Below, one piece after another: positions 16,084 through 49,291 of a stretch of 64,000 bases of DNA; positions within the stretch are counted from its first letter, which is position 1; every line of letters starts with the position of its first letter. The translations under genes were made by a program, and so were the position numbers. The stretch is from positions 682,001-746,000 of the forward strand of contig NC_092350.1 in NCBI RefSeq assembly GCF_963676685.1, given 5' to 3'. Origin of the DNA: Mytilus edulis. Lineage: Eukaryota. The notes under the pieces were generated by a model. It searched no databases, was not told the origin of the DNA, and saw nothing but the letters and a program-made list of their open reading frames with translations.

Positions 16084-19000
16084 TCACTCCTCTTTATGAT
16101 CATTGGACTCGGGAATGAGTATGTCCGCGAGACTGCGTAATTCCTCATACGTATAAGATTTGTTTGCTCTATTGTACTTCTTTTTAAATAATTCAAATCG
16201 CTTCATATGGCAGTATAGTTTTTCCATTACAGCTGGGTAAATCTTTTCTGCATCTTCTTGTCGAGCCTGAAAGTTAGTAAACCCAATAAAGAAAAAGTAT
16301 AAAAAGTCTAAACGGTTAGTTAAATATAAACGTAAAGTATGATGGTAAACATCAATCAGTTTCAAAATAAGCTCTTCAATGACTGTGTTGTCTTGAAGTT
16401 CCATACCTAAGTTGTATACGCATGATCCATACTCTTGCGTCTGTACTTGGTAATTTACTCCTTCTTCTAAATCTCCATCGAACAATAAGTGTGCCCTAAA
16501 CTTTTCTTCTATCATTGACATTAATGGAGCATTATCATTATCATTTTCGTACAGAAGAGCGTTTATTACTTTCCAAAGAGCAATGATAGTCTTAATGCTT
16601 CCAAACGGTTTCAAATTATCACGCAAGAATTGTATGACAGGGATACCGATGTCAGTTCGCATGCCTTTTCCAGTCATGCCGTCAATAATATACCGAATTT
16701 TATAGTCGTTTTCTATATTGTTATATCTTTTTATAACGCTGTCAAGGAATCTTTCCACAAATTCATAGTTTCCCTCTTCAACCCCAACTCTATATAAAAA
16801 ATTGCCGATTTCCTGTATAGTTTAATAAATTTCTTTTTCGTCGATGATTAAAAAAAGTTTGTCTTGGAGTAATTGATCGTCTAGCTGGTAAAACTTGTCA
16901 GTTTTTTTGGAAGAACTCTGCGGTATAAAAACTAGACATAGGATCTTGGCATCAGCATATTTAAAAACATAATCACGAATAATGTCGGAGTCGACTATTA
17001 AATTCACCAAACAGGTGCCCCTTCTTGTCAGTCCATTAAGGAACTTCATTATTTGTTCTGGTGTTGGTGAAAGTATGGAAAGTCTTTCAAGAAATTCATG
17101 AACAAATGAAACATACCTTTCAATAATGCATTTTCGAATATATTCCCCTATCATTTCTGGATTGCGACATACAAATGAATGTGTGACGATACAAACTATC
17201 ATTTTCGCATCATCATTTTTGTTTTCTGCGTCACTTTTATTGTCTGTCTGTAAACCGAGTGCGCTATTTACACAAAAAGTGTTTTTAGTTTCGTCTTTTT
17301 CATCAAATTTCCTTTCATCTTGGTTGTTTTCCTCGTCATGCTGATCATTCATTGGTGGAGGAAGCCACAGAGGAACTGTTTTGACATCTTCATCTTTTAC
17401 ATTTTTATATGATATATCGTTCTCTAGGAACAAACACAGTTTATCAATGAGTAACTTTGGGTCGACATGAATGACGGGTGATTTCGGTTCAGATAGTGTC
17501 AAGCTTGGTCTAATATATTGTAGAAAAAAGATAATATTGCAGTTGGCCTGATTCAGTAAAATTTCAGGACATTCGTTACCAAATGAGATGAGAACAGCAT
17601 CATAAATAGCCGGGTGTTTAAACATGTAAGCATTTATTGCTTGATAAGGGCAGTGATCGCGGTAAAATTCATTAAATCTTGAACATTTCATCAGGTATTC
17701 TCCTTCAAGCTGACGTATAGCTTGTTGGACTAATTTATTTTTAAATTTTGTTTCCTTTCCATCAAATATATTAAATATAGTTTGAAGTAATTTATCATTT
17801 TCTTTATGAAAACCGATTCTATTGTAATCCAATAGATTTTGTTCCAAAGCAGTGTATACCAATACACAGTATTGATATCTAGATGATAACCTATCGAAGC
17901 TTTCTTCGAAAAGATCGTCGACCTTATTAACTAATGATTGACTTGTGTCACGAAAATATGCAGCACCTAGAAATGTTAATGATTCATCCTGGCAAAACAA
18001 ACGACAAGCTTCCGGAAATCCAATATATGTGTCAAATGAACAGCACATGCTTATTGTTTCTGTACATATTCGAATTTCACTACATGACAACCGCTTAACA
18101 TCATCAGTACATTCAGATGAACAGAAAGGCAAGCCATCGTAGTCAAGCCATAGATCTAACCTTGTTTGACCTGTACATTGGGTTATTGACTTATGCCTCA
18201 AATGACTAGAAAGAATTGTGTAACGTTCTTTATATGACAGTTTGAAATCATTATCCAAATTGAGAATGCGTTTTCGATGAAATATGTCATGTTTTGCTAA
18301 AATATTTTCCTCGCATGTTGGGTCGTTTCTGATTGTAAACACAATTTTCAAAAGCGAAGACATCTTTACAAAACTTGACAACATATCCAGAATATTTCTA
18401 TGATCATCTTCGGAAAAGTCAACATTTATCCTACTAAACAGATCTTCGACAAGTACAATATTTTTGTCGGTTAATGAAATTATATCTCTGTACTTGATAA
18501 CATCTTTGTCTGAGAAGAAAAGTGGAATATATCCTTCGTCTTGGTAAACAGATGCTAAATAAAGAGCTATCTGTGTCTTTCCAGACCCTGCTTTAGCTAG
18601 CAGAATCAAGAGGTTTTCTTCTTTCAAAATCTGTTTCCCTTTATCAAGTGCCATTGTGTGAACAAATGTTTCATCGTCTCGGTGACTTTGGATTCTCGCG
18701 ATGCTGTGATCTATATAAAAAAATACATTTCTTTTAACGATTGCAAACAGATTTTATTTAATATTTTTGTATTTTTATGATCTCTTACTTCCAAATTACA
18801 GTATACTATACACTTCCAGAACACCTGAGACCATCCCCAGGTTTTGGTGTGGTTCGTTTTGCTCATTCTGTAGTTTTCTAGTTTGTTTTGTGCACTTTTG
18901 TTTGCCCATTGGTCAGTATATGTTTTGTCTATGACGTTGTCTGATTGTTTTCGACATGTGGGTTTGCATATTACTGTGGTATCGTTTGACCCTCTTTTAG

Positions 19001-47700: not shown

Positions 47701-49291
47701 CTCATTTGGTAACGAATGTCCGGAAACATTAATGAATCTGGATGTCTGCGATCTTGGATTTATTCTACAATATATTAGGCCAATCGTGAAACAACCTGAT
47801 TTTAATTCATCCGTCCTACATGTTGATCCAAACCTACTTATTGATAAGCTGGTATACTTTCTGGATGAAGATATATCATTCAAAATCAATTTTTCCTCAG
47901 ACTTTCAAATTACAGGAATTTTTAATCCATGGAATCCGCCGTTACCTGACTGTGTAGATGATGAAGACAGTTTTCAGGACCAAACACAATCTGACGAAAG
48001 CAAAGGCTATGAAAGTTCTGATGATGAAAATAGTTTATTTGATTCAGAGTCGGAAGATTCCAATCCAGAAAGCGATACAAATGACACAGATGATGACAAC
48101 GATGACGGAGAACCTTGGTTCCGTAGTTATCCAGAACTGATAGGGGAATATATTAGGAAATGCATCATAGAAAAAAAATACATCACATTTGTAAAACTAT
48201 TTCTTGAAAGACTCTCTACACGTGTACCATCCCCAGAGCAAATGAAGGCGTTCCTCAATGGACTGACCAGAAGTGGAACCTGCTTGATGAACTTAACAGT
48301 CAATTCAGACATCATACGTGATTCCACGTTCAAATATGGAGATGTAAATGTACTTTGTCTACTGTTTAGACCAAAGAGTTCGAATATTAAGCATTATAAT
48401 TTTTATGAACTAGATGATATCGTACTTCAAGACAAACTTATTGCGATCATGGACGAAAATCAAAGTTATAAAATTATAACGGAAATTGGAAACTTTTTGT
48501 ACAGAATTGGAATTCAAGATGAAAACCCTGAGTTTGTCCAAACATATTTGGACAGCATTATAGATAAATATAACAAACGAGAAAATGTTTATAAAGTCCG
48601 TTATATCATTGATGGTATGACTGACAAAGGCAGCCGAACTGGTGTTGTCTCCCTTTTTATAGTATTCATGCAAAAACACTTACTTACCTATGGAAGTATT
48701 AAAGCTATCATTGGTCTTTGGGAAGCATTATACACTGCAACACACAACAACAGTCAGACGGTTAGTTATATACAGTTAATGGGAGTTCTAGAAAATAAGT
48801 TCAAACATCATATACTATTAGGCGCTGACGCTGAACATGGAGGGAAATACAAACTACATACACAGGGGTATGGGGCATGTATATTCGATCTAGGTTTAAA
48901 AATGCAAGATAACAAGTTAATCGAAGAGCTGATATCAAAACTGGTTGAAATTTACGAATTATTTCTTGGAGGTAGATTGACTTATCATTTCGAATCACCA
49001 AACAGTTTCCATTTCTTAGTTTATTTTTATAACGGATTTACTAAATTTGATTCGCGAAAAGTAGATGCAACAAAAATGTGTCCTTTTGGAATGAAAAAAC
49101 TGCATCGTCATTTGAAGCGATATGAAATATTTTTTAAGAATGTAAGAGAAGCAATATCCCATGCCAATCAGTCGGAAGAAGACGTAGCTAATATTGAGTT
49201 TTTGTGTATACTTAGGAACATGAGCATACTCAATCCTAAGAACAGTGTTGACGAGGATGATGAAGAGGACGATGGTGATCAAGAATCTTAA
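41777..49291 (+). CDS. HEPN(DZIP3-like)-coiled coil-nSTAND3 NTPase paralogue C, about 1300 aa
   Basis: Exons 41777-41778 (AT), 42897-43596 (HEPN, RNKLYGH at 43363-43383), 44522-44984 (coiled coil), 45699-45722 (micro-exon DVRKQNLI) and 46578-49291 (Walker A GKGGSGKT at 46691-46714, Walker B IVIVEDLFG). Introns are GT-AG, the total is 3903 nt and there are no stops. Confidence 0.9.

Follow-up and report, generated by a model that had tools for sequence, protein, structure and literature searches.

HEPN domains of the DZIP3 type have been described in animals as fusions to NACHT, CARD, Death, LRR and other domains, with expansions in oyster and Nematostella, and a parallel with bacterial HEPN-STAND proteins was drawn in the same work (Anantharaman et al. 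2013, PMC3710099). In the pearl oyster, more than 50 HEPN-NACHT genes lie in tandem arrays that vary between haplotypes and show an Rx4-6H logo (Takeuchi et al. 2022, PMC9646362). HEPN_DZIP3 is also a frequent NACHT partner in cnidarians (PMC8260672, PMC10236652), where one survey found it to be the commonest non-LRR partner in 9 of 15 species (PMC8260672 / PMC10236652). An immune role of such HEPN-STAND fusions has been proposed from their architecture and lineage-specific expansion (PMC3710099, PMC9646362, PMC8260672). On the bacterial side, Avs5 combines Sir2, nSTAND3 and repeats; it is activated by a jumbo-phage protein, and both its ATPase and its repeats are needed for this (PMC12931631). 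In the literature searched we found no paper on nSTAND3 in animals and no experimental test of a DZIP3-type HEPN or of an animal HEPN-STAND protein. Here we describe a cluster of three genes in the mussel Mytilus edulis that join a DZIP3-type HEPN to an nSTAND3 nucleoside triphosphatase (NTPase) and a helical tail, and we suggest that they may encode ligand-gated receptors whose HEPN heads cut RNA.

The window, i.e., the whole stretch of 64,000 nucleotides analysed here (Mytilus, chromosome-scale contig C7, G000:C7:682001-746000), contains no N and belongs to a host assembly of 1.37 Gb, which was also searched. Sequence searches were run exon by exon, with the exons of one copy (C) as queries for a window-wide tblastn. 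Together with the open reading frame (ORF) listing and the six-frame translation, this gives exactly three paralogues, also placed by their ORFs and tblastn: copy A (21673-16084, minus strand), copy B (37801-27922, minus) and copy C (42897-49291, plus). Copies A and B are in tandem, while B and C stand head to head with about 5 kb between them. Each copy consists of four coding exons, namely a HEPN_DZIP3 head, a helical linker, a microexon of 24 nt and a large exon that holds the nSTAND3 NTPase, an acidic linker and a helical tail, and each gene encodes a single polypeptide of about 1300 amino acids. A preliminary description, made from the letters of the window, had proposed three paralogues of this size with an N-terminal HEPN, a P-loop STAND NTPase of the nSTAND3 type and a set of diagnostic motifs. 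This proposal holds. The tblastn search returns three sets only, with 1300 amino acids for C and an inferred 1296 for B; the Pfam profiles of HEPN_DZIP3 and nSTAND3 score above their curated cut-offs in all three copies; and all the quoted motifs are found by translation in A, B and C, i.e., HLDLTLLRCLLINFA, RN(K/T)LYGH, G(G/A)SGKT, IV(I/L)VEDLF(G/S), VFTIRND, GFPE and YMFKH(Q/P)A(V/I)(H/Y)DAV.

The cluster thus consists of three old paralogues of a Mytilus-restricted subfamily within the large bivalve HEPN_DZIP3-STAND family. The novelty of the kind is modest, as HEPN_DZIP3-STAND tandem arrays are already published for pearl oyster, corals and oyster. Specific to this locus are the nSTAND3 (Avs5-type) NTPase, a Cys/His insertion in the HEPN and a lineage-restricted tail.

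Architecturally, the mussel copies resemble the HEPN_DZIP3-NACHT proteins of pearl oyster and cnidarians (PMC9646362, PMC8260672, PMC10236652; first described in PMC3710099). Both have an N-terminal DZIP3-type HEPN with an Rx4-6H motif and an N after the R, a central STAND NTPase and C-terminal helical or other repeats, and both show lineage-specific tandem expansion and owe their proposed immune role to architecture only. However, the NTPase is nSTAND3 (PF20720) in the mussel but NACHT in the other proteins, and the mussel copies have an extra helical linker of 154 amino acids and a microexon between HEPN and NTPase. Their HEPN also has the Cys/His insertion but not the 'NGWG' loop that typical HEPN_DZIP3 domains of Mytilus possess, and the tail is a Mytilus-restricted solenoid instead of LRR, TPR or WD40.

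Avs5 (AVAST type 5, PMC12931631) shares with the mussel copies the nSTAND3 NTPase, an N-terminal enzyme effector (predicted in the mussel) and C-terminal alpha-helical repeats. Its effector is, however, a prokaryotic Sir2 that hydrolyses NAD+, whereas that of the mussel is a HEPN. The two are related as members of one Pfam family and not as orthologues, and there is no Avs match in PADLOC. Human SAMD9 and SAMD9L, which are reported to be structurally similar to Avs5 (PMC12931631), are animal STAND-type antiviral proteins with helical repeats; they have other effector domains and no HEPN, and are likened to the mussel copies by description. Bacterial HEPN-STAND proteins (e.g., from Bacillus cereus, PMC3710099) also combine an N-terminal HEPN with a STAND NTPase in a predicted conflict system. 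Their HEPN belongs to another family, not the DZIP3 type, and some carry C-terminal cold-shock OB folds; they are set apart by description. RNase L and IRE1, with HEPN domains of the KEN type, join a sensor, a nucleotide-binding module and a HEPN ribonuclease (RNase) that is switched on by ligand-induced dimerisation or oligomerisation. In contrast to the mussel copies, their HEPN is C-terminal, the switch is a kinase or pseudokinase and not a STAND NTPase, and the sensor consists of ankyrin repeats binding 2-5A; in sequence there is no kinship beyond the HEPN superfamily, among whose families RNase L is listed (PMC3710099).

The exon structure was worked out for copy C. Exon 1 (42897..43596, plus) encodes the HEPN_DZIP3 with its Cys/His insertion, follows an AG acceptor at 42895-96 and begins with a G that completes an ATG started in an upstream exon, after which come 233 codons. 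Exon 2 (44522..44984) encodes the helical linker of 154 amino acids, rich in E, Q and I, and ends at the donor G/GTAAT. It is followed by the microexon of 24 nt (45699..45722, reading ..DVRKQNLI.., with AG and GT flanks) and by exon 4 (46578..49291, AG acceptor at 46576-77), which runs from the nSTAND3 through the helical and winged-helix part, the acidic linker and the solenoid to the stop. All junctions are in frame when the DNA is read at the splice sites, giving 1300 amino acids.

Copy C is transcribed and spliced as predicted. The RNA reads examined cover 41000-46999, and a single RNA-derived X1 contig of 1455 nt aligns to 42897-43596, 44522-44982 and 46573-46795, with 21 letters left unplaced between the second and third blocks and another 50 that extend past 42897; together, the X1 contigs reach over 46573-46999, at depths of 4-17 over copy C. 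The joint 43596>44522, a GT..AG intron, is seen both in X1 and in X7, an RNA library on record. The aligner boundaries differ by 2 and 5 nt from the exon ends read from the DNA because the microexon and the intron share a TATAG ending, and the microexon together with this ambiguity accounts exactly for the 21 letters. No place was found for the upstream exon, i.e., the 5' untranslated region and the 'AT' of the start, represented by the 50 nt in the X1 contig. The M. trossulus RefSeq protein P0002 (1292 amino acids) starts with MLSTQ and contains ...KLDVRKQNLIDHSNAIIQ..., with junctions identical to those of copy C, and the microexon peptide recurs in it; the large exon is 99% identical to M. 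edulis P0001. Hence the splicing of the HEPN exon to the NTPase exon, anticipated in the preliminary description, is borne out by one contig that spans both in copy C. A gene-model artefact, in which separate genes were wrongly joined, was considered and is excluded by the spliced contig and the concordant P0002.

In each of the four RNA runs, depth is very high and loose ends are numerous over three stretches around copy C: 41200-41600 and 42400-42800 upstream of the gene and 45200-45400 in intron 2. An inverted pair of 97-nt repeats lies at 41266-41362 and 45250-45346. These high-depth stretches look like high-copy transcribed interspersed repeats.

The HEPN_DZIP3 profile (PF18738, curated cut-off 27 bits) matches the first exon with 32.1 bits in A, 32.7 in B and 34.2 in C (E 2.6e-8 for C). 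RNKLYGH or RNTLYGH is present in all three copies, in copy C at 43363..43383 (plus strand, by translation; R156, N157 and H162 in exon numbering), and it has the R-x4-6-H form, here R-x5-H, with a polar residue after the R. We aligned 24 HEPN_DZIP3 sequences, comprising the window copies, 12 other paralogues of the genome and 9 proteins from Mytilus; all of them share the motif's H, and conservation of its N is at least 90%. The AlphaFold model of the exon, built from this alignment of 24 rows, has a predicted local distance difference test (pLDDT) of 80 and a predicted template-modelling score (pTM) of 0.79. A Foldseek search of the PDB with the model gave nothing significant. In VIA, an exhaustive structure search over 48,161 PDB chains, ranks 1-4 are all HEPN proteins, with Csm6 from S. 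mutans at Z 8.5 over 112 aligned residues, a value that the tool's own note puts within the chance range for helical bundles. The others are Csm6 from E. italicus (Z 7.7), the C-terminal domain of yeast Swt1 (Z 7.3) and a CRISPR Cas nuclease-crRNA complex (Z 7.3); the HEPN of sacsin follows at Z 6.9, and the HEPN chains 1wwp, AbiF and 2hsb are lower still. Even with Z values that are only moderate for such a bundle, we regard the modelled HEPN fold as a secure assignment, because HEPN proteins crowd the top of the VIA ranking and both the Pfam match and the motif are present.

Within this domain lies a Cys/His-rich insertion (HLC..CCQC..CH..CCC; 43060..43242, plus strand, from the alignment) that has a counterpart in copies A and B. 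It is kept in relatives whose HEPN is about 50% identical (P0016/17/20) and is missing from the 12 other HEPN_DZIP3 paralogues of the genome; the alignment also shows that these 12 have an 'NGWG' loop instead, which is lacking throughout the subfamily described here. At the insertion, the model has lower confidence and short strands. It may be a metal-binding module.

Between HEPN and NTPase, the linker exon is predicted to be helical and amphipathic, with a hydrophobic power of 1.58 at a period of 3.6 and of 0.56 at 3.5, and has only weak matches to coiled-coil and helical-bundle families (ZorA tail, ApoLp-III, TRIM_CC). It had been described as a coiled coil; the helical amphipathic segment stands, but a coiled coil is unproven, as the peak lies at 3.6 rather than 3.5.

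The NTPase is identified by the nSTAND3 profile (PF20720, curated cut-off 27.2 bits), which scores 70.4 bits in C, 57.8 in B and 57 in A over model positions 1-155, and by its motifs. In copy C these are the Walker A GGSGKT (46697..46714; AGSGKT in copy A), the Walker B IVIVEDLFG (46829..46855), the FTIRND with a sensor-1-like T-x-R (46949..46966), the GFPE that forms the GxP motif of the helical domain (47267..47278) and the winged-helix-like YMFKHQAVHDAV (47660..47695), all on the plus strand and read from the translation. When the NTPase module is aligned with relatives as distant as 34% identity (A5), the D, F and G of Walker B and the T of T-x-R are invariant or nearly so, and G232, F233 and the winged-helix H367 are invariant; the comparison shows Walker A, Walker B, T-x-R, GxP and the winged-helix His to be conserved across the subfamily. 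The module thus has the motif composition of a STAND NTPase, its predicted helical and winged-helix part being recognised by motifs.

In the language-model Atlas the nearest neighbours of the NTPase are mollusc nSTAND3 domains (0.99). Bacterial nSTAND3 come next, some of them fused to Mrr-type nucleases, and then nSTAND5, NACHT and NB-ARC; the nSTAND3 clusters range over 0.99-0.93. PADLOC gives a match of the NTPase region to the candidate defence protein PDC-S73 (E 8.6e-10) and a marginal one to the P-loop of GajB, and no match to an Avs profile. No NACHT (PF05729) or LRR was found by Pfam in the copies at E<=0.1 to 1, and the proteins are therefore NLR-like (NOD-like receptor-like) and not NLRs in the strict sense. 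Sequence and profile searches of PDB chains reached no NLR, Apaf-1 or Avs chain; what they returned was limited to the P-loop (SRP54/Ffh) and to designer PPR proteins, the latter matched by the tails of more distant paralogues.

An acidic low-complexity linker rich in D, E and S (47924..48112, plus strand, by translation) leads to the C-terminal tail (48113..49288, plus), which AlphaFold models as an all-alpha, HEAT/ARM-like solenoid of 392 amino acids and which is the putative sensor. The model (20-row alignment) has about 20 helices, with pLDDT 85.2 and pTM 0.83. Foldseek found nothing significant for it in the PDB (TM 0.2-0.3), and its likeness to HEAT, ARM and TPR solenoids is generic only, with VIA Z up to 9.1. 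At the sequence level no Pfam family scores above its cut-off in the tail. HMMER against 1.84 billion cluster representatives yields 11 matches at E<=1e-3, of which five are strong; two can be named, and both are proteins of Mytilus. Matches in the Atlas stay below threshold (0.84), and a word-indexed protein search with the whole large exon or the NTPase alone finds Mytilus proteins only, so that a range of the subfamily beyond Mytilus went undetected in it but is not excluded. Judging from the model, it is fair to call the tail a novel sequence family of an ordinary fold class. The 'novel helical repeat' of the preliminary description is accordingly new as a sequence family, but its fold is a generic HEAT/ARM-like solenoid. 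The tripartite layout is present, with one spliced mRNA joining the HEPN and NTPase exons and a tail modelled as an alpha-solenoid.

Copy B mirrors copy C on the minus strand. Its HEPN exon (37111..37801, found by Pfam) is 83% identical to that of C at the amino acid level, the linker exon (34260..34722, by DNA alignment) has the same 463 nt, the microexon (33033..33056) is kept with 24 nt, and exon 4 (27922..30632) is an open frame that carries the nSTAND3 match of 57.8 bits and is 96% identical to M. galloprovincialis P0005. Acceptor and donor pairs are complete, and the inferred protein has 1296 amino acids. In intron 3 there is a 60-nt duplicate of the start of the NTPase exon (32448-32508, minus), about 1.8 kb upstream of the real exon; it is 82% identical to copy A at 18725-18664 and 79% to copy C at 46573-46624.

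Copy A still has a HEPN exon with intact frame (20989..21673, minus, found by Pfam) and the microexon (19341..19364, minus). However, only a remnant of exon 2 can be aligned at the DNA level (19927..20220, minus): its first ~70 nt have diverged, a 1-nt insertion shifts the frame so that it runs into a TGA at 19929-19927, and the 3' end has lost about 100 nt. Exon 4 (16084..18710, minus) is interrupted by an in-frame TAA at 16824-16822 and has small deletions towards its C-terminal end. As read from the DNA, copy A is disabled and copy B intact, and copy A is thus the decaying copy that had been noticed before. Upstream of the frameshift, copy A has a candidate donor in the right phase, CAGG/GTGAGT (19963-19974, minus, cut between 19971 and 19970), which could rescue splicing and give an in-frame mRNA with a shortened linker.

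Among annotated Mytilus proteins, none is more than 67% identical to copy A. The closest matches of copy C are M. edulis proteins (98-99%) and that of copy B is from M. galloprovincialis (96%). Orthologues of B and C occur in Mytilus at 84-99% identity and are intact in M. edulis, M. galloprovincialis, M. trossulus, M. coruscus and M. californianus; they are already in RefSeq and UniProt under these Pfam domain names.

Between the paralogues the synonymous divergence (dS) is about 1, and the duplications are therefore old. Amino acid identity falls from 80-85% in the HEPN and 77-82% in the NTPase to 68-74% in the helical/winged-helix part, 56-60% in the tail, 43-59% in the linker exon and 33-41% in the acidic linker, the lowest of all segments. 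The ratio of nonsynonymous to synonymous substitution (omega) is 0.15-0.18 in the HEPN, 0.13-0.23 in the NTPase core, 0.21-0.33 in the helical/winged-helix part, 0.30-0.31 in the tail and 0.4-0.6 in the linker exon. This gradient is the pattern of conserved effector and variable sensor that is typical of receptor families. The earlier suggestion of tandem divergence with one broken copy agrees with the dS, the identity gradient and the lesions of copy A, and the divergence fits birth-and-death evolution, although at this resolution it shows no trace of positive selection. In the HEPN exon (42897-43596, 37111-37801 and 20989-21673) dS is only 0.52-0.59, about half of that in the other exons (~1.0); gene conversion between copies or an extra constraint, e.g., on RNA, are possible explanations.

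We suggest, with a probability of roughly 55%, that the proteins are ligand-gated receptors in which the solenoid binds a ligand, the nSTAND3 module oligomerises and the clustered HEPN heads cut RNA. They would work as other tripartite STAND receptors do (NLRs, Apaf-1, bacterial Avs). In the resting state the C-terminal solenoid would keep the NTPase off until it binds its ligand, for which a protein derived from a pathogen or from stress is the likeliest candidate. The NTPase would then oligomerise in a nucleotide-dependent manner and gather the N-terminal HEPN domains, and this clustering would switch on cleavage because HEPN RNases build their active site across a dimer. The outcome could be translational arrest or death of the infected cell. 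We infer this mechanism from the architecture, by analogy with the tripartite logic of STAND proteins and the dimer-dependent catalysis of HEPN.

We favour the receptor because the Pfam domains, the predicted HEPN fold, the residues of catalytic type and the NTPase motifs are conserved, because the HEPN exon is the most constrained part while the tail is variable, because this tail is confidently modelled as an alpha-solenoid, because published work has proposed an immune role for HEPN-STAND fusions, and because the NTPase lies near mollusc and bacterial nSTAND3, matches PDC-S73 and belongs to the family shared with Avs5. Several points weigh against it. The Pfam margin of the HEPN is narrow, only 5-7 bits over the cut-off, and the best VIA score falls in the chance range noted above. 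The helical/winged-helix part of the NTPase is recognised by motifs alone. No sign of diversifying selection is seen in the tail, with omega below 1 throughout at this coarse scale. The literature searched holds no functional datum on RNase activity of any DZIP3-type HEPN. In two raw RNA runs from a sister species (X21, X24), hardly any reads fall on the exons of copy C, and expression is therefore low or conditional. Listed with these points is a homodimer prediction for two copies of the HEPN exon, whose score of 0.00 is no verdict and weighs neither way.

The most serious competitor keeps the architecture but has a HEPN that does not cut; it would be an RNA-binding domain or a homotypic adaptor, like CARD or Death, that signals through partners. 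Human DZIP3/hRUL138, the namesake of the family, is an RNA-binding ubiquitin ligase and to our knowledge is not known as an RNase, which speaks for such a role. A Cys/His insertion is not what one usually finds in a catalytic HEPN, and the R position varies in other HEPN_DZIP3 paralogues of the genome (FKN, AKN, IRD). Moreover, the HEPN occupies the position that CARD or Death takes in other invertebrate NLR-like proteins (PMC9646362). However, all three copies and every close relative retain R, N and H, the HEPN exon is under the strongest purifying selection, and a mere adaptor would not need the exact spacing of the catalytic triad. We consider a non-cutting HEPN unlikely.

A ligand-gated RNase could also be directed elsewhere than against pathogens, i.e., against retroelements, in allorecognition or against cells of transmissible neoplasia. 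Transmissible neoplasia occurs in Mytilus, and high-copy repeats, plentiful in the RNA runs, fill the locus. HEPN proteins may degrade viral and transposable-element RNA (PMC9646362), infectious tumour cells have been raised as triggers of expanded bivalve immune-type families (Kaur et al., PMC8195603), and fungal STANDs of the NLR type act in allorecognition. On the other hand, nothing specific to the locus points to retroelements, allorecognition or neoplasia, and old paralogues with orthologues at 84-99% identity fit conserved targets better than markers of self and non-self, which makes these other targets rather improbable.

It is hardly credible that the cluster is evolutionary debris, with genes that have no present function and are the still transcribed remnants of a large family that shuffles. 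Copy A is indeed broken in at least three places, copy C is expressed at low level (contig depths 4-17, almost nothing in two raw RNA runs) and the genome holds at least 600 candidate matches per domain, many with stops. However, even at a dS of about 1 the frames of B and C are still open over about 1300 codons and their splice sites intact, omega is 0.13-0.33 in the folded domains and orthologues are intact in five Mytilus species.

Returning to the ligand-gated RNase receptor, a further step can be speculated, namely that the subfamily is the animal counterpart of bacterial Avs-type abortive-infection receptors, in which a lineage-specific HEAT-like sensor would bind a protein of a virus or another pathogen, an Avs5-type NTPase would oligomerise, and HEPN heads with a metal-binding Cys/His insertion would turn into an RNase that shuts the infected cell down. 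We put this forward as tentative and on balance doubtful. If this further step holds, the subfamily would be the first demonstrated STAND receptor with an RNase effector in an animal. Should RNA cleavage be shown to depend on R/H and on oligomerisation, bacterial Avs-type and animal NLR-type immunity would be linked by an enzyme effector, and this would help to account for the unusual disease resilience of mussels. Hundreds of HEPN-STAND genes in bivalves and cnidarians have repeatedly been labelled 'NLR-like immune genes', and this locus is a compact test case for them, with a verified exon structure, an intact motif, two intact paralogues and a natural broken one, and an NTPase that shares its Pfam family with bacterial Avs5, which has been studied experimentally. 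As a genomic observation, it adds a subfamily to a known picture and not a new principle.

The family is large in this genome. First-look profile matches give at least 604 nSTAND3 and at least 651 HEPN_DZIP3 candidates, many of them with stops. Eight of the best 21 nSTAND3 matches have a HEPN_DZIP3 2-9 kb upstream on the same strand, among the 150 HEPN matches listed, and the fusion is therefore common in this genome. Many other loci share this arrangement, e.g., C10:23708863-23713089, C7:74575882-74578351 and C6:5806304-5814463. They far outscore the window copies on Pfam, with up to 112-117 bits, the best HEPN_DZIP3 paralogues reaching 112.

Two further features of the window lie outside the genes. 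An inverted repeat of 307 bp, 92% identical, flanks the cluster (15342-15648, plus, and 51342-51647, minus), with a weaker copy at 54334-54538; it could belong to a common interspersed element, or its two copies could delimit a rearranged block. An ORF of 128 amino acids at 7080-7466 (minus) matches Frag1/DRAM/Sfk1 (PF10277, E 4e-12, above cut-off) and probably represents one exon of a neighbouring, unrelated gene for a membrane protein.

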